A stretch of DNA of 64,000 nucleotides, from contig LSRY02000039.1 in NCBI GenBank assembly GCA_001643675.2, forward strand, positions 620,001-684,000. The letters are read 5' to 3'. Position numbers and translations under genes: made by a program. Positions 21,530-41,152 of this stretch are shown one piece after another (position 1 is the stretch's first letter; each line of letters begins with the position of its first letter). The notes under the pieces were generated by a model. The model saw nothing but the letters and a program-made list of their open reading frames with translations. It was not told where the DNA came from and ran no database searches. Source of the DNA: Monocercomonoides exilis PA203 (Eukaryota; Protista; Preaxostyla).

Positions 21530-22423
21530 GATTTGGAAACCTGAATGTATTGGACATGAAAATGGAAAAGGGGAGAATGCGTGTGTTTTTGACTGTAGTT
21601 TCACTTCATGTTCACTTACAAGCACTGGAGGTGGAGGCATGTGTTGTGCAAATATTCCAATCACACAATTCAAAATGAGGATCATTCAGTTAATTTCATG
21701 TTTAGCACGACAAGAGGGAGGGGGCTTGAGATTGCATCCAAACAGACAAACAGCTCCTGATGATGGATACTATTGTTATTTCCTTTTCTTCCACGAGTGC
21801 AAATGCTCTGCAGCCACTCCATATGTGCGTGATGTGATGTATCATGATTACCACAGTGTATATTTATCACAAAATAATCCGTTCTATGAATGTTGCACGA
21901 CAAACGCAGATGACCAGAGAGTGTGCTACGGATATAATTATGCAATTGCAAGCGCTTGGTCATATAACCAAACATCGAAAAAGGAGTGACTGAAGAGAGG
22001 GATTCTCAACCGATTTGTGGCAGTAAGCGGAGGTGGTGAAGAGGATTTTTGTGGAATTGATGAATCAAGTGCATGCAGAACCATTGGTGTTGCAGTCAGT
22101 CGATGCGTGATGCAGTTGAGCTTGTCAGTCACGCTGATGGAATGGGATCACACAAGCGAGACGACAACAATTGATATTGGAGAAAAGAAGATTTCAGTCA
22201 TTGGGAAAGGAAGAACGGAGAGTTAGATTGGAACAGGAGCACTTTCATCAACTGGAGCTCTGTTCAGTGTGTCAACAGGTCATCTTGGTTTATTGCACAT
22301 GAAAGTTGATTGTAACTCAAGTGCAAATCCTTCTTCACCGAGTGTGGTTGTGGCGTCTGATGGGAATGTGTCACTCTCATTGGAGGATGTTGTGATCACC
22401 ACGAGTAAAACAGGAAACTATGT
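21530..22423 (+). pseudogene. Surface protein family fragment, 5' part, interrupted by the Sola2-like element
   Basis: TGGGGMCC, QEGGGLRL, DFCGIDESSACRTIGVAV; in-frame stops; ends ..SKTGNY at the insertion site. Confidence 0.75.
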
Positions 22424-22999
22424 GGGTGATTTTTTTTGATATCATAAAAAATTACGAAGGTTGATCAAAATATTTTTTCATTAAGGGTTTGGTTAATAAG
22501 AAAATATTTCTGAAAAATTTTGCGAAAATATGCATTAATATATTATTATAATAATTAATTTGTTGATATTTAATATATTTAAATTGTTTTTATTACAAAT
22601 TTTGAAAAAAACATAATAAAAAACTATTCAAAATATTTCGAAAATTTTATAAACATAAAAACGCAAAAGTTCACATGTTTGAAAACATGAAAACAATTAA
22701 AACAATATCCTATTAATTACTTTTAAGAATGAAATTAGTTTTATGATGTTAATGGAAAGAAATTCAAAAATTGCTGTTGAAGATCCAAAAACGTTTGTCG
22801 AAAACAAACAATTTTAAAAGCAAAGAGATAAAAATTTGATAGAAAGCTAGATATTTATCTAATAAACAACACTTTGTTGTTAATTATTGTTAAAAAACAT
22901 TAATTCTAAAAATTACTTTTTTTATTAATTGATCAAATTTTGAAAAAAAAACAAAAGTGAAAATTTAAAAGAAAAATTTTGCGAAGTTAAAAATTTATT

Positions 23000-25900
23000 T
23001 CTTAAAACGCTTCCGCCCCTCAACCATCCTCATTTCTTCTTCCTCCTCTTCCTCAAATATTCTCATTTTTCATCTTTTTCTTTTTGGCATCGCATTCTAT
23101 TGCTTCAACGACTCCAAAGATCTCACATTCTCTGTGTTATCTGTTCTTCTCTGTTTCTTATCCTTCTTTTATCTATGCCAACTCAGTTGAAATTCCTGAC
23201 AGAGATCCTTCTGCTTTTTAGTCGAGAAAGAAGTTAGCAAGTTTGTGGTTAAACAACGAATCTTCAGCAGAATGCTTTTTTCCTTCCTCTTCCAACATTT
23301 CTTGCTCCTGACGCAAATGTTGAGTCAGCCAGAGTATTATCCTCCGTAGCTGAGCATCGAACCGGAAACATTGTATGTTCCACCTCTATAAATGCATTTT
23401 TTTTCTTATTCTCCCGAAAATTGAACAAAGCAATGTGAATCTGTTGTTTCGTCTCTGGCGCTATTTTGAAGGCTATTGTTTTACCTGTTAAGTCAGCATG
23501 GATATCTTTCTTCATTGTTCCAGCATTCATGCCCAAAACAATGAGTCCCTCTTTTTTCTCGACTTCACCTATCCTTCTCTTGCTACAAACACCTCCATCT
23601 GTAGCTCCGACTCCTCATAGTCCGGCCTTGACCTCGATGTGGATATCTTCTTCCTCCTCTTCATCACCTTCTACCGCGCTTTCCATATATTCGTTATCCA
23701 GGACACTTGCTCCTCTGCCCTCCAGCGCTGCTCCTTGCTTGCGCCCTGCGCCTTCCTCTCCATAGCCTATCTCCACATCTTCCACCAGGGTTGCCTTTCC
23801 TTCATCCGAATCGTATCTGTCTCGTTAAGTCTTGTTCATGTTCGCATCACAACCATTTTCTCGTTGTTGTTGTCGTTTTTTTTCAATACCTGCATGTACT
23901 CCAGCCACCACTTCTCCTTCCATTCCTCTTTCATATTCGCCTGCACCTAAGTCTTCGACCTCCTCGACTGATCGCTTGCTGTGTCCTCCTCCCTCTTATT
24001 CTTCCCCGAACATCATATCGACCTCAACTTTCCTCTCATTTGTTCTTGCCAAGGCAACCTTCGCCTTTCCAACATATCTGTCCATTCCCTCCACCTCACC
24101 TGCCCTGTTTTTCATCTTCCCGCTTCCTCTCTCTTTCTATGCCACGCCAACCTCTTCACCCTAAGTGCAGCCTCGCATGTGCTCCTGTTCGACGATGGTT
24201 CCAGCTGCTTCCTCGATCATCTCATTACCACGAATGTGGAAACCAAATGATTCAGCGTGTCATTTTCATCTTTTTGTTTTTTAAAAGTCAATAAGCTTCT
24301 TCAGCATGATGTACTCCTTCTTCACCACCGTTTTTTTCGACCAGCTCAGAGGCGAACAACTGTGTGCATGTCGACCGCTGCTTGTTCACCTGCAACAGAT
24401 CAGCCCGTCCACTGCGCACTCCCTGGCACTTCCAAGTGGCTTCCCAACCACGGATAAGCTCTTCGAAGCATCACCTTTTAAATCCCTTCCCTGAAGTTTG
24501 TTGCTGTGCTTAAGGACACTCATGAAAAAGAAGCAGCAGACGGAATGATTCAGATAAATAACAATTGATTATTTCTCCGTTTTAGCGTTCTTTTTCTTCT
24601 CGTTGAAGTCTTCTCTTCCAACTTCTCTCCTCTTCCATATTAAACTTTTTTCTTTTTAAATCTCTTCAATTATTTTAATCCGATTTCCATTCGTAATATT
24701 CAGTCTTTAATAAATTTATCTTTCTTTTTATCTTCATTCTCTTCGTTCACCAAACAATCATCTTCTCATCTTCAACCCGTTTCTTTTCATCATAAATTCC
24801 ATTCTTTTTTTTTCGGTTATTATCACTTATGAAGATGCAAAAATGAAGAAATACGATCGGAAGAAGAAGAAAAAGAAGAAGTGGTAGTAGAAGAAGAGAA
24901 AGAGGAAGAAGAAGAAGAAGAAGAAGAAGAAGAATTAATCGAAGAAAATAGAGGAGCCGGGGCAGAAGGGGCATCAGAAGGTGGAGGAAGAAGACGAAGA
25001 GAAGATTTAGAGGAGAAAGTGAGAGAACGAGTAATACGAGAAGAATTTTAGAAGAAGAAGAAGAAGAAGAAGGAAGAAGAAGAAGATTATGAATTAGATT
25101 GTAGCTGTGACAAAAGCAGAACAAGGAGGATAGTTGCAGGTGAAGATGAAAGAGCATCCTTTAACAAATGAGAAAGAATTCGAGAAAGTTGACTTCGCAT
25201 CGTCGAATTATTAGGAACTGTTCCAGATGGCTGGGAGAAAAGAAAGAGAAGGAGATGTTCGTTGATAACTCTGAAGTGAAAGAGAATGAGTCGAAGGAAA
25301 AGGGAGGGAAACTGAAGATGGAGAATTTTTTTATGTGAATGGCGGAGAAGAGGAAGAAGGAGAAGGAGATTGCGAAAGAGAAGAGAAAAGTGACTGAGAG
25401 GAGGTGATGCTTGTCATCAGCTGATGTGGAAGAATAACTGAGAATTAGTCTATCTTTATCTGATAGGAAAGTTCTCCTCCTTTTCCACTTGCTGTTCCTG
25501 ACGCATTTATCGCATTGCCAACAGAAGTTGTATTAGCTCCATCAACAGCAGCGTTTGAAGATCCATTCATGTTTTGTTAATTTGTTGAAACATTCAATAC
25601 CAATGAAGTCGACTGAGGCTCAGATGTTTGCTGAACGGAAGCAAAAGCGGAAGGTGTGGCTTGTTGTGATAACGCAGCACCAACGGCCTTTAACCGCTGA
25701 ATGAGAAAGGAAGAAATGGACACCGAAGGAGAAGAAGAATGTTTCTGGTTTTGGTGCATCTCGAATATGGCTGATATTTTGTGGAACAAGACATCCTTCA
25801 CCATCAGCCTGTGAGCAGCGGTTGCAACAGCAGTGAGTGCAGTGCGCATGGCCAGCAGACAAAGCAGCAGGCGATTGGACTAGGCGGCAGAAGGGCTAAT

Positions 25901-28890
25901 GGGCTGAGTGGAGAATGAGATGATAGCAGGTGTTGTGATGGAGGATGACATGGACTGAGAAATAGAAAAAGAAGTGACACAGGAGCTGAATAAAGAAGGG
26001 ATGGAGAACACGAAAGATGAAGTGAAAGATGCTGAAAGCAGCTTTGAAGGCAGAGTGCGGACGATTGAAGTTAGAGGATAAGAAAGCATGAGAGGGCACG
26101 CATTGACAAGAAGCACTCATGAAAACTTTAGAGAAGACAGAATCGAATGCTTCTTTCCTTTCTGTGGATGCTCAGTGCGCATCGGAACAACCTGAAAAGA
26201 TGGATTTGTCAGTTCGAGCTGAGTTTCTCCGATGGATGGGACATATGCCGTTCATTGAGGAGGAACTAAAATTATATTTTCTGAGGCAGACGGTAATATT
26301 TACTTGTCTTTGATAAAGACAGACGAAGCAAACAGAAGCGGGTCTGCAAATAATCGTGTTGACTGCAAATGTTTCATTGTCAATTGAATCTGAAGAGATG
26401 CCATTACCATTATCTCTATTGATCTTTTTATGCACTTCAAACTCGTTGCTGTAGGTTCACCTCTCTTCGCAAAACAACTCCGCCGTGCCATTTGCAGCGT
26501 CCCTTCCTTCCACAGTGCCCTTCCTTCTCCTCTCCACAAACTCATCTACTTTCTCATGCTCATCACCAGTTGTGTATCTTTCACTGCATCTTCTTCCCCC
26601 AAACTGAACAGCCTCGTGCAACACAGCAGATTCAGAAACTAGTTCGCATCATTCACCGATATTTCCATTGTTACACCTGCGTGAGATGATGGAATCGTAG
26701 AAGGCTTTAGAAGATGCTGAAATTTGAGTTGATTCAAAAAATGGGACAGCGCCTTTCCGAGTGAGTGGAGCAAAGTGGCGCCTTCTTTCTACCCAACCTG
26801 CTGCATCGACCACAAAACAGTGTTTCCAGCCCTGTCTTCAGTCTGCCTTTCCTCCCAAACAGAATGATAATCCCAAAGTCATCCACTCCTCCACCATTAC
26901 ATCCTCCTCCATTGGAATTAATATAAGCGTAACCTGTCTGGCTAGGTAAACTCGCCGAAGAAGAAGAAGAAGAAGAAGACGCATTTACAAACTCGTTCAC
27001 CGCAGCTATTCTGAGGTGTGTCTGCGTTGATCTGCCGAGTGCTGCTCTGATATCAGACAAGACAGGATGAATTCGTGACACTGAAACAGCAGCCAAACTG
27101 TGATTGCTGTGTCTTCTGTGCGGGTTCTGCATGGCTTCTCTGCATCCGTCTGAGCCAATTGCGTTCTCGTCTTCTTCTGTCTCTCTATTTTCCTTCGTGG
27201 GCTTGGCTGAAGGAAAGGTGAACTGCAGAGGAATCGGACTGAGCTCTCCGCTGCCGATGGTCGGAGTGGGTGAGAAAGAAACACGGGACTTCTTCTGATT
27301 GCTCTTTTGGGATGTTGATGAAAGCATCTATGGCTGTTTGTGGGGGAAGCGCAGGGCAGGGCGTGCGTATGAGTCTTCTTCTCTTTCTGTCGTCTTGTCT
27401 GTCTCATCGGCATTTGATGTGTCAGCAGATCGTGATATATCGAAATAATCTTCATCATCGCTAACGTAACTATCATCGCTATCGCCATTCTCGCTATCTT
27501 CTTCTGCTTCTTCTGAGTCTGCTGCACCTGCTCCGTTCATTCTCTCTCTCCTCTCTTCATTCCGCTTCAAATAATACACATTCTTCCATTTCCCTCTCGG
27601 CCACATCTTTCTTTTTGGTGTCTTTTCCCTTCTTTCCTCTTCCTGAACAAGATTAGTCGGTAGCAGAAGGTCAGCTGGCTTGATTGTCGGAATGATCCTT
27701 CCATGTGTCAGTTTCAGTGTGTTCTCCTTCAGCATCGTGATTGCCTCCTTCTTCTGTCTCTCTTTCATCTCAGCTGCTTTGAATGTTGTTTCGACTGAGC
27801 TGTTTTCTCTCATTTTTGCAGAGTTGAATGTGACTGTTGTGTCATATTCAAAAACAGATCTGAACTTTTTCTGTATCTGGCGGTTGGCTTGTATGCTTGT
27901 CAAAGATATTTTTGCACTGAGAATCCTGTATAACTTCAAATCTTCTTCTTTCCCCTCTTCTTTATCCTTATCATTCTCTTCTTTCTCCTCCTCCTCCTCA
28001 TCATCATCCACTTCCTCGTCATATTCATTTTTATCGGTGTTTCATTCACTTCTTCCACTTGTCCCACTCGTGTCAGACTCAGAAGAGTCAAATGTGATGC
28101 AGCCATCTGCCACACGTAGCAGCTCCAGCTCTCTCGAAAGCAGCTCACTCAGCACATCATATAAATTCAACGTCGGACTTGTCTTTGATCTGAATGCTTT
28201 TCCTTTCGCTTTTCCTTTCCCTTTCACGCTCGCTTATCCTCTCCGCTTTTCACCTTTTTGCCTGCAAAACTCCAATTCATCTGATAAAAGCTCTTTAAAC
28301 ACAGAAATAATTCTTTTCTTATCTTTTTCCTTTCTCCTTTCTCCTTTTTTTCTCCTCTTCTTTCACTTTCTCTTTGTTTCCAAGCTTCCTCTAACTCTCC
28401 AATGTTACAACAGTTGACTTCAAACGCCTCGCATTCTGTGCAGTCACATTTGCACTTGCTCCTCCTTCGCTCTTCTTCCCCTGCTGACTCAGCCCCATCG
28501 CCGTCATCATCTTCTTCCTCCACATCTTCGGTGGTCTTCCTCTTGGTATAGCCAGCGGCACTTGTTCCATCACAACACGTAATAGCTTCTTCTTCCTATT
28601 ACTATTATTATTGTTGTTGTTGATGTTATTTCCACTTCCTCCCTTCTTGTTTGTCAGCCCCAGCACTTCTGATTTGAACTCTGGTGAAGCAATTCTTGAG
28701 CCCGTGTGTGTCTTCACACGAACTATCCGCTTGAAGGCAGCAAGCGCTTTTCATCTGTTGCTTCTTTTGAGTGTTCTTCCAAGTGCGGTTGTTGAAACAC
28801 TCAGCAGTGAAACAAATAAAGAAGAGAATGAAGAATTCTTTGTTTGAATTCCTGAAATGGGGAAAGAGGAAGATGGAAATCCAGCATTTA
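23000..28890 (-). pseudogene. Large low-complexity protein gene with AT-hook-like motif, disrupted (left cargo)
   Basis: Chain of frameshifted minus-strand ORFs (28391-28717, 28224-28523, 27328-28011, 26734-27327 and others); PRGRPPK at 28526-28546; Cys cluster CKCDCTEC; boundaries approximate. Confidence 0.5.
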
Positions 28891-29158
28891 ATGAAACAGA
28901 AACAGAAGAAGATAAAAGACTTGAAAATAAAATTTCAAAATAAAAATAAATAAAATACCTTGAAGGACAAACATAGAAAAATTTGCTTTCACTCCATTGG
29001 AAACGGGAAACAGCAAAATTCTACTCAGGATTCAGTTGGATAATAGTGAAAGAATTTCGAATAGGAAAAGAGAAAAAGCATTCGAAATATTAAATGGAGT
29101 CTTTCATAAGTTGCAAAAAATAAACAAAAATAGAGTATCAAACACAAAATTTCAAACC

Positions 29159-29233
29159 TTTTTCTTCGTCGAAATCCCATTTCAAATTTCAATATTTTTA
29201 TTGATCTGCAATTTGCAGAAATGCTTTTTTGAT
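29159..29233. repeat. Internal inverted repeat, left copy (partner 34747-34823)
   Basis: ~75-bp imperfect IR with a perfect 23-bp core TTGATCTGCAATTTGCAGAAATG (29201-29223 vs 34760-34782). Confidence 0.75.
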
Positions 29234-30121
29234 ATATCAAGATAATATTTATATGTTGTTGAAGTATTTAATGAGGTTAATAACGATTTCTTCAAATTTC
29301 CACGTTATAAAAAGTTTTCATGATCATTGAGATCTTTTTTAAAGCAAAAAAATTTTTTTGTTGATCTGTTGAGAAAAATTCATGATGAATTTTTTTGAGT
29401 TTGTTGGTTTTCTTTATATGACATTGCAATGTGGAAGAAATAAAAATGATTACAAGGAGAAAAATGCTTGTATATTTGAATTTGAGTATTTTTTCGAAAT
29501 GGAAAAAAGATCAATGAAATGAAAAAAATACGTTAAAAAATAACAGTCGAACACCAATCAATATGACATAAAAAAACAAAAAGTTCTTCATGATATTAAT
29601 CATTATAAAAATTGAAAACAGTCAGAAATTTTCTAATCAGATTCAATAACTTTCAATAAAACATAATTCTATCACATAATCATAAAAACTATCTCCAAAT
29701 GTCAACAAAACGTCAACAATTTTGAACAATAAAAGATAAATAAAAAATCTATACTATTTCAGCAAATTTGTGGTATCAAAGACAATTCCAAACAAAAAGG
29801 AATACTTGTATAAAAAGTTCAAAAACTAACTTGTCTATTTTCCCTCTGTTTTCCATCCACTCAACCCTTTCTGATATTTCTCTTGTCCAAACTCAAAAAG
29901 AACAAATCCAACAAAGAAAAAAGACAGACACAATGACAAAACATCACTTCACACTCTCAACAACTCTCCCTTCCAAAAATCTCACCCAAAGATCAATGAA
30001 TTCCCTCACAACTCTCTTTATTAATGAATCTCGATATATACATAAAAATTCGGGACTATTACCAAGTGAAAATAGGAACATTAAAGGGACAAAAACCACA
30101 AGAAAACAATCGGATTCTAAC

Positions 30122-30249
30122 TGTTGTGCACCTGGGAGGCTGTTCGTCGTATCCAGGTCCGGATAAAGCAGCCCGAAGGCTGCAATATCTAATACGAACA
30201 GTCATGTCCAGCACCCTTCCGATAGAGTACCAGCTAAGCATGCACAACA
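30122..30249 (-). ncRNA. Candidate structured RNA directly downstream of the transposase stop codon
   Basis: ~52% GC island; 9-bp closing stem 30122-30130/30241-30249; 8-bp stem 30140-30147/30194-30201; GCAGCC-UUCG-GGCUGC hairpin (30168-30183); two more hairpins that need G-U pairs on the minus strand. Confidence 0.55.
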
Positions 30250-30258
30250 ACTAGTTTC

Positions 30259-31624
30259 TTAATTAGGGACACCAAAAGAACAATTTTGAGATTCACAAAT
30301 AGAAGAAGAGTCAAGAAGAAGCTCCAATCTCCTTGAAAGAAGATTTTGAGAAGATTGAGAAAGAAGAGAAGAGTTTGATGATGCATTACCAGAGTGAAAT
30401 GACTTTCTTGTCCGTTGCATTTTCTCTTTCATTGTTGAAGATTCGAGGGCAACCAGAGAGCGTTGAGGAAGATATCCAACAGCCGAAGCACAGACAAATG
30501 AGCCCTTGCGCTCAAAATACAAGTAGTCCTTCATGTGTGGAACAGACAATGATGGCCACGAGATTTGTTGAGATGGTGCATATTCTTCAAAGTTCCTCTC
30601 ATGCACAGAGTCATTGACAGATGTTGAAGATGATGAAGAGTTTGATGATGATGTTGAGATGTTGTTCAATTGTGAAGTTGAAGAAGCTGATGTCGAAATG
30701 TTCATATTGTTTTCGAAGAAGTTGATCAAGTCATGAAGTGTGGTGATGTGTTCAGTTGATGGGTTGTTGTTTGTTGCATTCACTAACGCACCAAATTCAC
30801 TATCACAAATATTCTTTCCGTGGTGCTCAGCGAAGAAGTTGAGTTGAGTGTTTTTCTTTTTCAAAAGTTTTGATTGTTTGGAGAGGATGAAGTGAAGAAG
30901 GAAGCGATTTCTGTTGTATGGACCAGAATCGCAGAAGAACTTAAAAGTGTGAGTGTCTGAGAAGAAGTGTCTTTTGATCACAGATTCCAGACACTCAATA
31001 ACAAATCTGTGATCATTTGAAAGGCAGTCGGAGAAGAAGTTGAATGTTCTTTTTATTTGTTGATTATTTCTTTTTTGAAGAGAGATGATTGTGAACTGAG
31101 AAACCTGTTGATAATTGAAGAATTCTTGTTGAAGTTGATTTTTTCTGATAGGGAGTTTCCATTTCTCTTTGAAGTCGAAAACGAAGACTGCTTCTCCTTC
31201 TTTCAGATTGTCGACAGTTGATTGATAATGTTTTCGTTGCATTTCTGCAACAAGACGATGTTGACGAAGAAGTTTGAGTGCATGAAACTCAGCAGAAGAA
31301 AGTCCATTTTTGTTTTGTGAAGATTTGAGTTTATTCTCCAGATAGTCCAACTTCTCGCACATTCCGCAGAGATCCGTTCGTCTTTTCGCCTTGGAGAAGT
31401 TTGTTGTCAGCTTGTAGAAATGGGAAAGAGATACTTTGATATTCGTTTCTTCTGAAAACTCTTTCCATAATTTAGTCTTGGGCTTGAAGATTAATCTCTT
31501 TTCATTGGGAGAAAAGATGCCCGTTTTCTTTCTTTTTTCCTTTAATGCTTCCAATCCGTAGCTTGATGTTATTGATGAAGAGAGTGGAGGAATGGAAGTT
31601 GGTCGATGAGGTGGTGTGATGAAC

Positions 31625-31669
<45 letters not shown>

Positions 31670-34056
31670 ATGATGTTTGAAGTGTTAATGCTTGATGGTT
31701 CAGAAGATAAAGAAAAAGAGGAACCACCAAATTGAATTGTTGAAATCGTTGGTTTTGTTTTTTCTTTGGTATAGAATGAGAGTGATGGAGTGTAACCTTG
31801 TTCGTAAAGATCCTTCCATGCCTTTGTCCAATTTTCGATGTTCAGTTCTGTCACATCAGCATCGTTGCAAATATTCCATGAGACATCGTTTCCTCTATTT
31901 CTTTTGATGACAGCGATATAATGGCCATTTCTTTGATCCAACTGTTTATGAAGAATTTGCCCAACAAAATGATAAAAATACTCTTCTTTATTGTTCTCCA
32001 GGAGATGTTGAAAATTATCATTTGAAAACCCTTTGCAAAACGAACGCTGATTCACTCTATCGGTTTCCATGACGAAGGTTTTTGAAGGTGCAGAGCAAGC
32101 AGTTTCAGTGCATTCGTGACAGATGGCAAGAACCTCTGGAAATGCAACCATTTCCTCCCATCGAGCAGCACAGCATTTCTCTTTGCATTCATCACAATTA
32201 ACATTGTTTTTTCCATCCAAAATTTCTGTTGCAAAAAGTGAAGATAAACCTTTGTGATGTGATGATGTATTGATGATAACACTGCAACAGGATTCATTAA
32301 AATGATTAGAGACTTTTTGACATTTTTGACATTTGAAATGAGTAATGAGCACTGGATTGAAGGTATCCTTTTCAAATATCTTATTATCTTGAAGAAGTTG
32401 ATGAAGATTTTCAAATGCTTCTGTCACATTCTGTTGCTGCCTGCTTCTGTATCCGCAAAATGTTTCCCATTTGTTGATCAGTGATGGAACCCACGAACGC
32501 ACTGATGAACCATCTTTGGCAAGTTGCTGACAAACACTCAAAACACGAGAAGACATTGTTTTTATTGCTGTTTGCTTTTTAAATAAGAATGGTTTTTGTG
32601 AGGTTATCGAAGAGAAGCATTGAAGAAGAGATGAAAGATAGCATGTGTTTCCTAAATTTATTAATCCTTTTATTGATGTTGATGAAGAAGAATCTGATGA
32701 TATAATTTTTGAAGAGGTAGATGAAGAAGGAGAAGAATTTGAATGAGGAAAATCTGTTTGATTGTTATTCATCGTGATCTGTGCAGTATTTTCATGATGC
32801 GAAATAACATTCTCATCGGCAGGTGTGTTATGTTGAGACGAATAAGTGTTGTTCTCTTTTGAAAATGATGAAAGAAGATTTTGAAATGCTTGTGGTGGAA
32901 TTAGAGTCGGTGAAGTGGCATATTCAATTAATTGATCACTCACCCACACATCATCGTTGAAAAAGGCAGTTGAAGATTCTTCAATAGAAAAAGAATTTAT
33001 ATTTTCTTTTTGTTTCTTTTTGAAAGATGAAGAGGATGAGGATGAAGAGGAGGATGAGGAGGATGAGGATGATGAGGAGGAAGATGAAGATTTCGAAAGT
33101 TTTGCTTTGAATAATTTGTGAATTGGAATTGGTGAAGGAGACGAACAACGTCTATGTTGTGATTTATTTGTTTTTCTTTTTGTTGAACCCCTTTCTCTCC
33201 TAATTGGAGCACTGATTGGAGCATCAACAGCTTGAGATGGAGAAGAATTTGTTGAAGAAGAATTTTTTTCTGTAACGACATTTGATTTTTTGTTTTGCAG
33301 AGATGATATTGAAGGAAAAGAAGATTGTTTTTTTCTTTGAGATGAATTTTCTGTGATGATTTCTTCATCCCACGCTGCTTCGTCAATAAATCTCGCACAG
33401 TCAGGCTCAGCTCGCTGCTTTTTCTTTGCTGACTGAAGCGAAGTTGAGGCTTCAGTTGAATGGGCTAACATCCAGTTGTTGCCCTTTTCCCAGTCCTGTT
33501 CATTTAAGCCTAAAATAAACAGAGAAAATCACAAAAAAAATATTAAATAAATACAAACCACTTTTGCAAGACGGAAGATGAGGTTTTTGAGGCTGAATGA
33601 TAAATCCTTGGTTCTTTTTGAGCGTTTGCTTCGCGTAAATTAATTTTCCTTCTGTCACATCATATCCATAGTTTTGAAAATCGGATAATAATGTGTTTCG
33701 AGACAACGCCTGCAGCAATGTTGTCTGAGTGTGCAATGGAGCGTTATTGTACACCACAGACAGGTCTTCCAGCAGCTTTATGTGATATTCTGTTTTAAAT
33801 TAATAAATAATAAACAAATAATAAAGAAAGAAAAATTAACAGAGAGTTGAAATGACATGTTTCACTCAATCCATAAAATAAAAGCCAAACCATTCAAAGA
33901 CTTCAGTAAATCATTAATTACTGAAGATGATTGCCTATAGTTGAAAAAGAGATAGATATGCAATGAATCAACGTCATCTCCACCAATTCGTTTTATTTCG
34001 TTCCATAAAACTTTGCATCGAGAATTAAGAGTTGATTGAGGTTTTGAAAAAGACAT
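30259..34056 (-). CDS. Sola2-like DDD transposase with inserted USP/peptidase C19 deubiquitinase domain; join(30259..33509,33559..33789,33891..34056), 1215 aa
   Basis: Two GT-AG phase-1 introns join in frame. USP Cys box GLINLGNTCYLSSLLQC, QQQNVTEAF, CxxC pairs, His box ILH..GHYIAVIK..WNICND. Transposase motifs TDLCGMC, VFDFKE, FCDSG, FFAEHHGKNICDSEFG. Confidence 0.88.
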
Positions 34057-34746
34057 TTTTATTGAAAAAATTTTTTAATTATGGTTTGATGATATTAGAG
34101 ATTTATATGCTGTTGTTTGAATTTATAATACTTTTTTATTAATTTTTTTAAATTTTTTTTAAGATTTGTGTTCATTCTAAGAAAAATTGGCAAATAAAAA
34201 AATACAAAGAGCTTCCAAAAATGAATTAATAATATTCAAAATTATCCTTCTGAAAATTTCCGAAAGTTCAAAACTAACATGATTTTTATCTCCTTTTCCA
34301 CATCATCAGGAAAAAACATCAACATTAAACAATAAAATAATAATTCTTTTAAAAAAATGATTAAAAATATTCAATAACAAGAAATTAGCATCTCTATCAC
34401 AACTAAAATATTGTTTAAATTCATTATTCATTTGTTAATAAAAAATTTCACAGCAAAAGAATAAATGGAAATATTTTGAACAGTTATATTTAAAAATATT
34501 GAAAAATTTTTTTCCAAAAAGTTCTTTTTTCAATGTTGACAAATAAAAAACAAATAAAATTTATTTCATCGATTGAAAATTTAAAATTAAAAATTTTTTA
34601 TTTAATTAATGTTTCATAAAATATTCTTTCTGAAAATTGCTCAAGTTGATCTTTTCGATCAATAAAAGATTGTAATTATTTGGCAATTTGCAGAAATCGT
34701 TTTTGCATATATGGATCTCTTCTTTATATCATTTGTACCATTTACA

Positions 34747-34823
34747 ATCAAAAAATTATCATTTCTGCAAATTGCAGATCAACAAAAAATACGAAATTTG
34801 AAATGGGTTTATAACAAGAAAAA
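34747..34823. repeat. Internal inverted repeat, right copy (partner 29159-29233)
   Basis: See left copy; a third partial copy GCAATTTGCAGAAAT at 34683-34697 forms a local inverted repeat with this one. Confidence 0.75.
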
Positions 34824-35109
34824 TAAAATTTGATTATCTTTTGAAAACCTTCGTTTATTGAGGAAACTGCATAATATATAATTCATATCGTAATTTACTA
34901 CTTCTTCTGTTATATACTTCAAAAGATACGCCCAATTCACTTCTCTTCCATTTGACATAAATAATGCTGGTTTCTACTTCACTGCTTCTCGTTAGAAGCA
35001 ACAGAATATAAATTTTTCTCAATTTATTCGAAAATAAGCATATTTTGTCTTTTTCTTCATCTATTACACCTCCTTCCTACTCTCCCTCCCAAGATATTCA
35101 CGTTCAATC

Positions 35110-38100
35110 ATCTTTGATCATGTTGGCTGTGGGAAGTCAGCGCTTCCAGCGTCCATTCTGGGAGAGACTATCAGTTTGGAAGGGAAAGGTTGTTTGAGGG
35201 GGAAAGTGGCATATGTGTCTCAGGTGTGTAAGTTAGAAAGAATATAAGAAAATAAGTTATTATTTATTATTATTATTATTTTAATAACTTTATCTCTTAT
35301 AAACATTATATTCATCATTTGTTTCACTGAATTTATATTCTTCTTCTTCTGACATGCATCATATATCTATTCCTCTGTCATATCCGTTCAGATTCCCCAC
35401 ATTTTCAACGACATTATCAAATCCACATCCTCTTCCACACTCCCTTTGACCCCGTCCGCTACGCTCGTGTCATTCAAGCATGTTGTCTGGAACTAAACTT
35501 GGACATTCTTCCTGGCAGAGACGAAGCAGAAGTGGGCAAAAGAGGATACAACCTGTCGGGCGGGCAGCGAATGAGGATAGCTCTGGCGAGGGCAGTCTAT
35601 TCATCGGCTGAGGTGTTTCTGTTGGATGACATTTTGGCGAGTATCGATGCTCATGTGGGACAAGCGCTGGTCATCAAATGCATCAGCCAGCTGCTGAAAG
35701 GGAAGACCGTCTTGTTAGCGACACATCACACGAAATATCTGCCTCACTTTGACACGGCCATCGCGATGGAAGAGGACGGGAGGATCAGAAAGATAGGCAG
35801 GGCGGAGGAGTTTAAGGGGATTGTGAAGGAGATGGTGGTGATTGTGAAGGAAAAGAAGGAAGGAAGGAAGGAAAGGAAGAGGAGAAGGAGAAGAAGAGGA
35901 GAAGTGAGGAGAAAGAGAAAGAGAAACATTGGGAGATAATTTTGAAAACAATTGTGAGAAGATTAAAGATGCAAATGACATTCCTTCTCCATCATCATCA
36001 TCATCTTCTTCTTCTCCATTCAACTTGACTCACTCAAACACTTCACCTTCTCCACCCATTTCACCCATTTCACATTCACCTTCACATTTATCTTCTTCTT
36101 CTTCTTCTTCAATCATTCAAACTCCGATTTCACTTTCTCCTTCTCCATCCTCTTCTTCCTCATCCTCATTCTCTTCCTCTTCCTCTTCCTCCTCTCCTTC
36201 TCCTTCTCCTTCTCCCTCTGAACTGGGGCATCTGAAGGAGTTCATTGACATGGAGGCTGATTCTGTATCTCTCTCCTCTGTTTTGTGGTATTTCAAGCAT
36301 GCATCGTTTTTCCTGCTATTCTTTGCGCTGCTGACGATTGCACTGAGCAACGTTGCTCAGAATGGGAAGAGCGCTGTGCTCAACACGTGGACTGCGAAGG
36401 ATGCACAGATGGAGCAGATGAACAGGATACTCAATGGACTTGGAGGAGAAAAGAGAGGGGAGGATGAGAAGAAAAGAAAAATGAATTTTGAACAAAACAT
36501 TGAATGATTCAGTTATGTCATCACCACCACCATCATCTCAAGAAAACAATCACAAAAATAGTGACAATTCAAAAACAAGAACATCAAAAAATTCACTTCA
36601 GAAAAACTCCTTCAAGCACAAAAAGCAGAAGAAGCAGAAGAAGAAAATGTTTCTGTTCTCCTTTCTGAGCCGTTTCAATCTTTCGTCAAGTTTCTTATTC
36701 TTTATCCACATCATCATGAAATTATTCTTGTCGCTCGGCGAGATTCTTGTGAATTTGATCACCACCCGCTTCCGGATGCAGTCTGCCCATGCCATCAAGA
36801 CAGAAGTGTTCTCAAAGCTTTTCCACGCAAAGATGAGCTTCTTCGACACCACACACACCAGCATGTTGTACAGAAAACTGAATGGTGTGAACCCCATCAG
36901 CAACAGCGCACTCCATTCCTTCACTGTCACTGCCTCCTCCCTCGTGAAGCTGCCCTTGGCACTGGTGGAGATACATTCATCGATTCCAACGCTACTGCTG
37001 CCTGTTGACCTGGCAACGAGTTCGATGGCACTGATCAGCCATTCAACGTCCCTAGCAAAGCATCACATTTACCGGTCGTTGGTTGCTGTCCGAAGCGACT
37101 CAGTGCTCTTTTTCAAGCAGGTGGCAAAGCAGCTGCAACGTTTGGTGAACAGCAAGATGAATACGCGGGCACATTACAAGAAGCCGCTGTTGATTCACAC
37201 ATGCAAAACAATGTCATTGCAGTTGTGTGGCCAGCTGTTTCCGGAAATACACAGAAACGAAAAGAGGGATGAGAAGCTGTTTAAAAGAACGTGTGAGATC
37301 GAACAGGAGGTGTCGTCTATGGCTCCGTTTGGCTCGATTCGATTGCAGACAGCAGAATGAGAGACAAGAATAGGAGTGATTTAAGAGAGGGAAATGGGGC
37401 TGATAAAGCGATTGCTGCAACTTCTTCTTCTTCTTCTTCTTCTTCTATTTCTTCTTCTTCTCCTTCTCTTTCTTCTTCCATTTCTTCTTATTCTTCTTCT
37501 TCTTCTATTTCTTCTTCCTCTCCTTCTTCTCTTTCTTCTTCTTCTTCATCTTCTTCTTTTTCTTCTTCTTCAGCTTCTACTTTTTCCTCGTAGCGTCGAT
37601 TTTTTTGAAACAAATTCATGACATAAGAAGACCAGCAGATAAAAAGGATGAAGCAACAGCTAAAATGAAGAAGGAAAAGACAATATTTCATTCTCCCACC
37701 AGATGTGTTTGAGGCGCTGCCGCTGTTTGCAGAGTTTCGGATGGTGGAGCGGTATGCGAAGAATCTGGAGAAAAGGAAGAGAGAAAGAGAGAGAGCGAAA
37801 GAGAGAATGAATGAATGAGAGAAGAGAAGAAAGAAGGATAAGAGAACTGATTAAGATGAGGAAGGTATTGAAGCCTGAAAATGATAGAGATTACAATGAT
37901 GATGAAAAAGAAAATAATGTCAAAGCAGAAGAAAACGAGAGTTTATCATTGATTAGAAAAGATTCTTTAAAGGAACCGAAGAAAAATGAAGATAGTGAAT
38001 GCCTTTCCGACAGCTTCATCATCAGTGATGAAGTAGAGCGAAGAGAGAAGAGGCACAAACAGAGAGAGAAACAGAGGTTGATGCGAAGGTATTACCAGGC

Positions 38101-39680
38101 GCTTGAGCTTCAACGTGATTCTGTTGTGAATGAGGTGCTTTTGATGGTCAGACCAAACTTGCTGCTTTCTCCAGCGCCGATTGACGAGTCTCTAAAAAGA
38201 CCAGGAATGAGTGTGGATGCTTCTAAAAGTGAGGGAGATAGCAAAGAAGACAGAAAAGAAGAGAAAGATTGGAATAATTCTGTGAATGCAAATGGAAATA
38301 AGGAAGAAGAGAAAGGATATGAAGATAGCACGAAAGATGATGATAAAGAAGTGGTTTTAGAGGATTCAATGAACAACCCCAAAGAAGCTGCTTCAAAAGA
38401 AAGACTGTCAAACAGAATCAGATAAGAATACAAACGCAAAAGAATCTGTTCAAAACAACAAAAAAGGCGAAACGAATAATAATGAGCCAAAACCAGAGCC
38501 TCTTTCATCGCAATCACAACAAAAACAGCAGCAACAGAACACAACACCATCACCTTCTCCGCGGCCTAAACAATATTCTTCAGGAAGAGGCGCCTTTGAA
38601 ACGATACACTATACGCGAGGGAAGCGAATGGACGGAGGATGGAGATGGGGAGAGGGGCTGTTGGTGCACCTACAACGCCGCTGTCACCTGCTGTTGGAGG
38701 AGGAGGGGGAGAAGGGGTTACGTTGGGTGTTATGGGAACGAAGAATTTCAACAAAGAAGTGACAAGGGCGATATTTGATAAATTTCAGAACGAGAAAGGA
38801 TAAGTAGACGATGAAGAGGCGAAAACTACGTTTTATTCATTGGAATCTGATGATCAGAGAGAAAAACTGCTTCGGCTGATGAAACTGCAGGAAATTCAAA
38901 AGAAGAAAAAGGAGAAGAAAGAAGAGAAAGAGAGGAGGCGGAAGAAGAAAGAAGAGCGGGAGCGCAGGAAAATGGAGAAAGTGCCTGCGTATGCAGCAGT
39001 CGATGCAAGGCAGACAAGAAAGCGGTTGAATCTGATGAGTGCGCTAATGAGCGAGCTGAGGCAGATCAGGGCTGAGCTTAGAAGAGGAAGAGTGATGAAG
39101 TGGCGGGGCTGGTGGCCGTTCAAAGAGGAAGCAGAGACGACACACAGGAAGGGAAGGAAAGGAGCAGGGAAAGATCACCTCTGCTGTTTCAGAAGGAGAA
39201 AGGGATAAGAACATTCAGTCAGAGCAGTGTGCCCGGAAGAAGAGATGCGTTGTCGAAGCTGTTTTCTTCGCTTTCGTTCTCAAAATTTGCATCTTTCTTC
39301 ACATCGCAGAATTCAATGGCTATGGATCTGATGCAGAAACACCCTGTGCTCAATTTTGTTGCGCATTTTGATTCAACTGCAGAATTTGACGCAAATGAAA
39401 ATATTTCTCTTCATCCTCTCTCTAACTGCACTTCTTCACTTTTCAATTCGTTCATGTTTATGAACATCCAACAACAATCTTCTCCTTCCATCAGAACTTC
39501 TTTATCTCCCTCGCAGCAATACCACGCTAAACTTTCATCTTCTGCTAGTCCTGCAGCTCCTGACTCTCTTTCTCTACTCTCACTTACTGCTCTATCTTCA
39601 TCTCCTTCTCTTTCATTCAACTCCCCTCAAATTCGATATCGTTTCTTATCTTTCATTTCTTTTCGGAAGCACAGATAATT
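35110..39680 (+). pseudogene. ABCC/MRP-type ABC transporter pseudogene, 5'-truncated (right cargo)
   Basis: Walker A-like HVGCGKSA..ILGE, KVAYVSQ, signature NLSGGQRMRIALARAVY, Walker B VFLLDDILASIDAHVG, TMD2 motif KMSFFDTT; many frameshifts; no TMD1; 3' limit uncertain. Confidence 0.85.
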
Positions 39681-40809
39681 ATTTATTCTAACATAGAATG
39701 CCAGCTGAAGTTATATGAAAATGAGAGAACTATATTAAACCAAGAAAAGCTGATCAGAAGGCACGAAATCAACAAGAAAATCGATTCTGACTTTTTCATT
39801 TTGAGATTGAAAGAATTTGAGGAAACAGAAAGAACGAGGCGGGGAAATTTTTCTTTGAACAAACAGTTGCAGGGATAGTTTTCGAGAGATTTCACAACAT
39901 CGTGTGCCTTCAAAAAGTCGCTGAACATGAAATGGGAGAGGAAATATAAAAGAGATATAAGTTTTTGAGTGGATGTCAAGGGTTTTTAAAAGCAAGTGAT
40001 GGAACATGCACCAATTAGTTAAGTCGATGAAAACTCATGAATTTTTCTATGAAATGGAAAATGAGAAATTTAGAAAAAGGAAGAAACTATGAGGAAATCA
40101 GAAAAAATTCATTGTTATAAGTGATTTTTGTACCATCGGAGCTGAGTGTGAGTGTTTGAGTTGGAACAAATGTTGAGGTGAGGGGAGTGAGAAAGGCGTC
40201 TTGGTGGAGGGAAATTCCGCCGTTGAGAACATACTCGATGGAAGCATATGGTGTCTGTTGGGGTCTGCCAAAGGCATAAGCTTCAATTTCACTTCTGAAA
40301 TCAATGTTATTCTGGGCAATGAGAGGGAATCAGCTGTTGAACTCAGACTTATCTGATATGCCACTAAATCTATTTTCGTAAGATGAATCCTATGAATGGA
40401 ATAAATGGAATGGGGATTTGTTGGCTATACAAAGGTGAGGAAAAAAAAGAAAAATAACTATTATTGTTAAATTGGTTTCAAAATTTTTGTTTTCTTATCT
40501 TTTTTTCTGTTCTTCTTCATAATTTTTTTTATTTTCAATGTTTTGTTTTTTCTGTTATAAAATAAACATTTTCTTTTTGAAGTTTTATTTATTTGTTTTT
40601 GGTTCATTTTTATTTTACTTGATCAAAAAATTCTTATTAATGAAAAAAGGTATGTTTTTTTGTTCTTATAAATTTTCCAAATATATATGACAGAAATAAA
40701 AGCAAAATACTTGCAAAAAATCATTTATATTCTTTGATCAATAAATACCACAATAGATTTTATTTTTTCGATTTTTGATCTTTTTTTATGATGTCAAAAA
40801 AAATCACCC

Positions 40810-41152
40810 ATGTGATGTCTTTGTCAGTGTTTGTGGTGCCGCTATCGCAGCTGTCGATGGTTGGTGTGGAAATCAAAGATATGAATATCTCAAAACCATT
40901 GTACTCTGAGCCGGATCTATCTCCTTCTTCTTCTTCTTCATTGTTGTCATTGTCGTCATCTGCCCTGTTTTGACATCCACAACATTTGGAGATAGAGTGC
41001 TGGAGAATGTGAAAGTGACGAATGTGAAGTTGACTGAAGGAGATGAGGTGGTTGTGGAAAAGAGTGTGAAGGCTGGAGAGACGTTCGGGATGATGAGCAC
41101 GAGAACAGAAAGTGAAGCAGAGTGGCCGTATATTTGGGAAGGGAGATTCTAG
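40810..41152 (+). pseudogene. Surface protein family fragment, 3' continuation of 21530-22423
   Basis: VMSLSVFVVPLSQLSMVGVEIKDMNISKPLYSEPDLS continues the frame broken at 22423. Confidence 0.75.

Follow-up and report, generated by a model that had tools for sequence, protein, structure and literature searches.

The gene at the locus

The stretch of DNA considered here is a 64,000-nucleotide window of contig LSRY02000039.1 from the metamonad Monocercomonoides exilis PA203, and all positions are given in the numbering of this window. At 30259-34056 on the minus strand it harbors a long, intron-containing gene, the predicted product of which unites a deubiquitinase domain of the USP/C19 type with the RNase H-like catalytic core of a DNA transposase. 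The gene is situated within an 18.4-kb unit delimited by terminal inverted repeats (TIRs) and 4-bp target-site duplications, and it is highly probable, in view of the architecture and relationships described below, that this unit is a transposon of the Sola2 type. The interpretation favored in this article is that the gene encodes the transposase of an autonomous cut-and-paste element, in which the USP domain probably acts as a deubiquitinase in cis.

The greater part of the gene is a minus-strand open reading frame (ORF) at 30259-33471, which extends for 1070 codons without interruption and provides the residue numbers used throughout. Re-derivation of the spliced form from the sequence resulted in a three-exon model of 3645 nt, or 1215 codons, which reproduced exactly the exons, introns, and codon count of the 1215-residue spliced ORF proposed in a preliminary description of this DNA. 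The codons of the candidate catalytic residues named there, namely Cys277 (32641-32643), His517 (31921-31923), Asp766 (31174-31176), Asp848 (30928-30930), and Asp890 (30802-30804), were also confirmed without exception. The long third exon encodes, in order, an N-terminal Ser-rich region, the USP domain, a linker, the Sola2 core, and a C-terminal domain (Table 1).

The predicted splicing is supported by the comparison of ten copies of the family as well as by the gene model of a paralogue. In an alignment of these copies over the region preceding the long exon, both introns diverge with insertions and deletions and yet retain their GT and AG ends. The reading frame is maintained in both exons of this region, and the exons that flank intron 2 are conserved. 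The start codon and the frame of exon 1 are kept in nine of the ten aligned copies, in which the differences fall mostly on third codon positions, and a stop codon is located in exon 1 of one copy (L003). Furthermore, the NCBI model of the paralogue MONOS_11334 displays identical junctions, which read SLN/E/YHIK at intron 1 and CKS/G/LNEQ at intron 2, and the same model omits the Cys box of the USP domain as an 'intron'. No family match was obtained in a Pfam scan of exon 1, exon 2, and the N-terminus of exon 3.

It was also observed that the NCBI models of the family are truncated or split (MONOS_11334, 12024, 7069, 5520, 16375, and 16548; P0001-P0004, P0040, and P0162). All of these models are named 'uncharacterized protein', and the label PF00443 is carried by only two fragments.

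Table 1. Positions of the predicted exons, introns, and domains of the gene, and of the ends, repeats, and cargo of the element, in the window
Feature	Position	Strand	Remarks
Exon 1	33891..34056	-	start codon at 34056
Intron 1	33790..33890	-	101 nt, GT..AG
Exon 2	33559..33789	-	conserved N-terminal transposase module
Intron 2	33510..33558	-	49 nt, GT..AG
Exon 3	30259..33509	-	uninterrupted frame; TAA stop at 30259-30261; open in ~27 of 43 scored genomic copies
USP/C19 (Pfam UCH) domain	31834..32667	-	aa 269-546; Cys277, C381/C384/C426/C429, His517, Asn536
Sola2-type module	30682..31506	-	aa 656-930; helix-turn-helix-like segment, TDLCxxC..H motif, RNase H-like DDD core (D766, D848, D890)
C-terminal beta-rich domain	30427..30606	-	aa 956-1015; strands in the AlphaFold2 model (model residues 318-377), pLDDT 86-92; conserved in relatives
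Left target-site duplication, ATGT	22420..22423	.	same 4 bases at both element ends
Left TIR, 28 nt, GGGTGATTTTTTTTGATATCATAAAAAA	22424..22451	+	similarity to other copies begins here
Right TIR, 28 nt	40782..40809	-	27 of 28 bases match the left TIR
Right target-site duplication, ATGT	40810..40813	.
Inner inverted repeat, left arm	29159..29334	.	downstream of the transposase gene; matches 34657-34823 inverted
Inner inverted repeat, right arm	34657..34823	.	upstream of the transposase gene
ABC transporter gene fragments (cargo)	35331..37357	+	end of ABC_tran and part of ABC_membrane; Pfam E 9.6e-7 and 3.9e-5, stop-to-stop frames

The USP domain

The deubiquitinase portion was recognized by the Pfam family UCH (PF00443) with a score of 56.8 bits (cut-off 23.9; E 3.4e-15), the match covering positions 2-241 of the 254 positions in the profile. 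The same segment also gave sequence matches to the solved chains of USP34, USP2, USP15, USP21, and USP36, those to the first four having E values from 1.6e-5 to 1e-4. The residues expected of such an enzyme are found in their usual settings: Cys277 is located within the Cys box GLINLGNTCY, two CxxC pairs (C381/C384 and C426/C429) constitute the zinc ribbon, His517 is placed within the His box NGHYIA, and the N536-D537 pair follows four residues past a conserved Trp. The Cys box, the four Cys of the zinc ribbon, and the His box, together with the DDD motifs of the transposase core, are retained in every intact copy of the family. The presence of a full USP domain with its Cys, His, N-D pair, and two CxxC pairs, as well as of Ser-rich linkers on both of its sides, had been claimed in the preliminary description, and these features are indeed there.

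The poly-Ser tracts that flank the domain (32900-33000 and 31560-31700, both coding) differ in length by up to ~30 residues between copies, and they disrupted the word-indexed protein searches.

The transposase core and its assignment to Sola2

An exhaustive HMMER search of a 1.84-billion library with residues 639-1070 yielded 611 homologues at E<=1e-3. Alignment of 30 of these relatives disclosed invariant columns at Asp700 (within TDLCxxC), His738, Asp766, Asp848, His884-Gly-Lys, and Asp890. An AlphaFold2 (AF2) model computed on this alignment attained a predicted local distance difference test score (pLDDT) of 79 and a predicted template-modelling score (pTM) of 0.75. Its elements are arranged in the canonical RNase H order b1-b2-b3-a-b4-a-b5-a. 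Of the three catalytic Asp residues, one is positioned on strand 1, one behind strand 4, and one where the helix following strand 5 begins.

When this model was compared with 48,161 solved chains by VIA-align, the cores of retroviral integrases, Mos1, Metnase, and IstA came out on top with Z 8.8-9.7, at a root-mean-square deviation of ~3 A over 140-168 residues. These were followed, at Z 5.6-8.3, by TnsB (Z 8.3), Sleeping Beauty, Hermes, Mu, Tn5, and the P element. Foldseek, queried with the 432-residue model, returned only low-TM matches of the RNase H-like kind, and the outcome of VIA-align was the clearer of the two.

The more precise assignment originates from a protein of Polysphondylium pallidum PN500, PPL_04538 (P0120), for which the match to the core had E values of 6.3e-15 (library search) and 2e-22 (pairwise BLASTP). 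This protein was recognized by eye, over long identical stretches, as the 'Sola2_PPa-1' listed in Additional file 3 of Bao & Jurka 2013, and Sola2_DFa-2, which is also printed in that paper, exhibits the same motifs. In a comparison made at the level of motifs only with the core blocks of Majorek 2014 (Sola1-1_AP, Sola2-1_HM, and Sola3-1_HM), the blocks DF[AK]EN, [FI]SD..HD, and NFFA..HG were found to be common with Sola2. The Sola-type catalytic core suspected previously has been substantiated as an RNase H-like DDD domain homologous to a curated Sola2 transposase, and the type is very probably Sola2.

General domain resources contributed little to this assignment. A Pfam scan of the core gave no family match, no Pfam family was assigned to any of the 611 core homologues, and cluster look-ups of the core relatives provided no family names. 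Weak matches to DUF7869 were noticed in 4 of the 30 relatives, the nearest Atlas clusters being those of DUF7869 or unnamed ones. A profile search for named relatives, which was swamped by low-complexity words, recovered nothing but M. exilis models and a single protein from a sponge.

Origin of the fusion

The N-terminal portion of the protein is shared with transposases that possess no USP domain. A stretch of 76 residues encoded by exon 2 matches the N-terminal region of the relative P0053, and an iterated exon-2 profile, run on a small pre-selected set in which many relatives are fragments, matched ~45 USP-less relatives, always N-terminal of the core, as well as PPL_04538 weakly. The USP domain is regarded as an insertion because the two flanking modules are separated by only ~20-70 residues in the USP-less relatives, in comparison with ~650 in the M. 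exilis protein, where the gap is filled by the USP domain and the Ser-rich linkers. This spacing agrees with the earlier proposal that the domain had been inserted between the N-terminal region and the KRL..CxxC core. USP was present in none of the ~140 retrieved relatives from outside M. exilis, and M. exilis also has a USP-less relative of its own, P0006. Outside the family, the USP that comes closest shows 22-25% identity and has no transposase domain.

The ancestral Sola2 transposase consisted of the N-terminal module, the helix-turn-helix/CxxC..H segment, the RNase H-like DDD core, and the C-terminal beta domain. Into this arrangement ~600 residues were gained between the N-terminal module and the core, which comprise the USP/C19 domain bracketed by the Ser-rich linkers.

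The element and its family

The element that contains the gene spans 22424-40809, and its similarity to other genomic copies terminates at both of these points. A second complete copy of 19.5 kb on contig C1 is flanked by ATAT on both sides, and single flanks of other copies read ATAT, ATTT, ATCT, and AGAT. In the M. exilis assembly (82.3 Mb in 101 contigs), to which all genomic copy counts refer, the TIR pattern had 407 matches, compared with 0 for the reversed control. Pairs of TIRs that enclose a coding copy have a spacing of 18-25 kb, and those in which none was detected have one of 4-7 kb.

Examples of the latter are inverted TIR pairs 4.4-6.8 kb apart and without a transposase match at C1:2516291-2521606, C8:623776-628233, C17:958322-963828, and C27:172056-177774. 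Such short pairs are likely to be non-autonomous derivatives of the family.

The family comprises at least 43 scored coding loci, with 77-97% identity to the protein, and the USP domain was aligned at the same position in all 43 of them. Approximately 27 of these loci are open over 1052-1184 codons, and the rest contain 1-4 stops. The family as a whole has clearly been active.

Selection and family history

The ratio of non-synonymous to synonymous substitution (dN/dS) was estimated by the method of Nei and Gojobori among 9 intact copies with dS values of 0.4-1.0. The median values are 0.054 for the catalytic core, 0.10 for the C-terminal tail, 0.19 for the USP domain, 0.24 for the N-terminus, and 0.36 for the linker between USP and core. 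The USP domain is under purifying selection.

When the window copy and the copies L003-L011 were compared, the dS of the copy pairs varied from 0.2 to 1.0 in the USP segment, compared with 0.4-0.5 in the transposase core. Because the dS of the USP segment ranges widely while that of the core is steady, this pattern suggests that the copies are mosaic through recombination between subfamilies.

The core of the window copy has a peculiarity of its own. It alone carries Tyr at residue 852 (30916-30918, minus strand), a position occupied by His in 13 of the 13 other copies examined. This position lies four residues past the catalytic Asp848, and its column is at least 90% His in the 30 distant relatives. 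The nearest relative of the window copy shares 96.5% DNA identity with it and contains two stops. On account of this private H852Y replacement and of the stops in its nearest relative, the intact ORF is no proof that the window copy is active. The preliminary description had taken the open frame as a sign of recent activity or selection, of which selection is borne out by the dN/dS values and recent activity of the window copy is not.

Proposed function and rival explanations

The conserved motifs make it reasonably likely that the USP domain is a catalytically active deubiquitinase. As a working enzyme, it would travel in cis with the transposase and raise the success of transposition by removing ubiquitin, which could take place in two ways. 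Ubiquitin might be stripped from the transposase or the transpososome, which would thereby be stable against the proteasome, or it might be stripped from chromatin or from repair factors at the donor and target sites. Protection of the transposase itself or of the transpososome, for which the OTU and VTD deubiquitinases of Helitrons, with the like role suggested for them, serve as the analogy, is advanced here tentatively as a possible mechanism.

A more far-reaching version, in which the USP domain would be an obligatory catalytic partner of the transposase that edits host ubiquitin marks in cis at the site of excision or integration, appears rather doubtful. Marks on histones and repair signals of the PCNA type would be candidates, for example, as would the ubiquitin-dependent processes by which the transposase is silenced or degraded. 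If this version were true, direct manipulation of ubiquitin signalling would have been shown for a DDE/DDD transposon for the first time, in independent convergence with the OTU and VTD domains of Helitrons and herpesviruses.

Several observations weigh against the interpretation of the gene as a Sola2 transposase with a working deubiquitinase in cis. Membership in Sola2 has been deduced from one curated relative matched by eye together with the comparison of motifs, and the production of a single mRNA and a single protein is inferred from conserved frames and gene models. Pairwise dN/dS among transposon copies blends selected and neutral branches. A donor gene for the USP domain was not found in the word-indexed search, which recovered the family itself and one metagenomic USP of 22% identity. 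The window copy, with H852Y in its core, may itself be inactive or crippled despite the open frame. The fold of the USP domain and the geometry of its triad are read from the sequence alone because the AF2 model of the domain, built from 10 sequences, reached a pLDDT of only 35.8 and was discarded.

The remaining objections concern the USP domain more directly, and they also speak for an alternative in which it is a non-catalytic module that binds ubiquitin or another protein and might, for instance, hold the transposase on ubiquitinated chromatin or on some host factor. The domain is divergent, scoring 57-65 bits against UCH, compared with 100-160 for the host USPs of the same genome, and it has the motif QQN in place of QQD, which is the canonical form in USPs. 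It evolves about 4 times faster than the core at non-synonymous sites. Domesticated VTDs, moreover, furnish a known precedent of inactive domains derived from deubiquitinases (PMC9741609). On the other hand, no variation in GLxNLGNTCY, GHY[IV]A, or the N-D pair is seen among any of the intact copies, across dS values of up to 1.0. Pseudo-enzymes usually lose their catalytic residues, and a purely binding role is accordingly judged unlikely.

The fusion might also exist at the level of the ORF only, with a USP protein and a transposase made as two products. These could arise from initiation at an internal site, from alternative splicing, or from a protein that cleaves itself proteolytically within the Ser-rich linker. 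Such a division would be compatible with the long poly-Ser linkers on both sides of the USP domain, and the NCBI models do divide the locus, in several ways. However, the frame is open through both linkers in ~27 copies, and the linker itself has a dN/dS of 0.36. The splits in the NCBI models are suggested to be prediction artefacts because the models are mutually inconsistent and one of them skips the Cys box. The production of two separate proteins is therefore given little credence.

The many intact copies with dS of 0.4-1.0 and strong purifying selection could also be conceived as an expanded or domesticated host gene family which resides within repeats and no longer functions as a transposase, and the genome paper does suspect that some 'repeats' are expanded gene families (PMC8767320). 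This is very improbable, since the copies are contained in units that share the 28-nt TIRs and 4-bp duplications, the 407 TIR ends include short non-coding pairs, about a third of the scored copies have stop codons, the DDD triad is invariant, and no second transposase was found in the element. A chance ORF and two separate genes were also considered, and both were judged unlikely.

Relation to known systems

Sola2 DNA transposons are said to have been described by Bao et al. in 2009. The amoebozoan Sola2 elements are 10-15 kb in length with short TIRs and 4-bp AWWT duplications, and giant members were reported from Dictyostelium fasciculatum (DFa-1/2/3) and Polysphondylium pallidum (PPa-1/4/5) (Bao & Jurka 2013, PMC3627910). 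The M. exilis element resembles these giants in its homologous DDD core with RTDxCxxC, DFKEN, SD..HD, SDxGxHF, and HGKSxCD, in its 4-bp AT-rich duplications, short TIRs, and cargo genes, and in its large size, which amounts to 18-25 kb here. In contrast, the transposases of the giant elements have no USP domain, and their cargo Fanzor1 is a separate gene, whereas the extra enzyme of the M. exilis family is embedded inside the transposase polypeptide. The hosts also differ, being amoebozoan in the former case and a metamonad in the latter.

Deubiquitinase-class domains are established passengers of another group of transposons. OTU and VTD domains are well documented in Helitrons, the VTD domains are biochemically active, and, according to the proposal of the authors, they keep proteins required for transposition from being degraded by the proteasome (PMC9741609). 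In the HELIANO survey, Pfam UCH was included among the domains stably carried by Helentron-type elements (PMC11417382). The M. exilis family shares with the Helitrons and Helentrons a deubiquitinase-class cysteine protease that is stably carried and often fused to a protein of transposition. Nevertheless, the Helitrons are rolling-circle elements with a RepHel protein rather than a DDE/DDD transposase, and the UCH of the Helentrons is a Pfam listing in a survey without characterization.

The association of a cysteine protease with a cut-and-paste transposase is likewise known from the Ulp1/C48 SUMO proteases of Mutator-like elements (KI-MULE) and Zisupton. These proteases belong to clan CE rather than CA, act on SUMO rather than ubiquitin, and occur in other transposon superfamilies. 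With respect to the cellular USPs (USP34, USP2, USP15, and USP21), the domain has in common the Cys box, the zinc-ribbon fingers, and the His box with N-D. It differs from them in its ~20-25% identity, in being embedded in a transposase, and in having no close relative outside the transposon family.

The author of the preliminary description knew of no earlier fusion of USP with Sola. No fusion of USP/PF00443 with a DDE/DDD transposase was encountered in the published full texts that were searched, and an entry for the family may already exist in Repbase or Dfam. The novelty of the fusion was overstated: the family does not establish a new category because UCH, OTU, and VTD in Helitron-like elements as well as giant cargo-bearing Sola2 elements are already known.

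If the favored interpretation is true, mobile elements have captured deubiquitinases repeatedly, with USP as the third protease class and a mechanistically different type of transposon (DDD cut-and-paste) as the carrier. Such convergent capture would lend weight to the view that ubiquitination by the host generally impedes transposition. With both domains in one polypeptide, many natural intact variants, and clear catalytic residues, the family would render the role of a transposon-borne deubiquitinase directly testable. In the M. exilis genome paper, 35% of the nanopore assembly was assigned to unclassified repeats (PMC8767320). The family described here classifies part of that fraction and corrects ~40 fragmentary models of an 'uncharacterized protein'.

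Cargo, inner repeats, and other UCH loci

Outside the transposase gene, the element carries only gene fragments, and the statement in the preliminary description that the ORF is intact among pseudogenes is a fair one. The ABC transporter fragments are located at 35331-35936 and 36485-37357 on the plus strand, and apparently no intact gene is present. Ten cargo frames were scanned with Pfam, and no OrfB_Zn_ribbon (Fanzor/TnpB-type) or other transposase match was returned.

Other UCH domains of M. exilis, with scores of 125-160 bits, were noted, each within one open frame that is 3,250 to 10,690 codons long, for example at C18:971861-973780, C69:1943494-1944951, and C2:942835-944391. These loci encode giant USP proteins or else belong to a different family of repeats.

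The transposase gene is enclosed by an inner inverted repeat of ~175 bp, which is also found in other copies and contains conserved blocks such as TTGATCTGCAATTTGCAGAAATG. This repeat could have a regulatory function, it could provide sites at which the transposase binds, or it could be left over from an ancestral element of smaller size.

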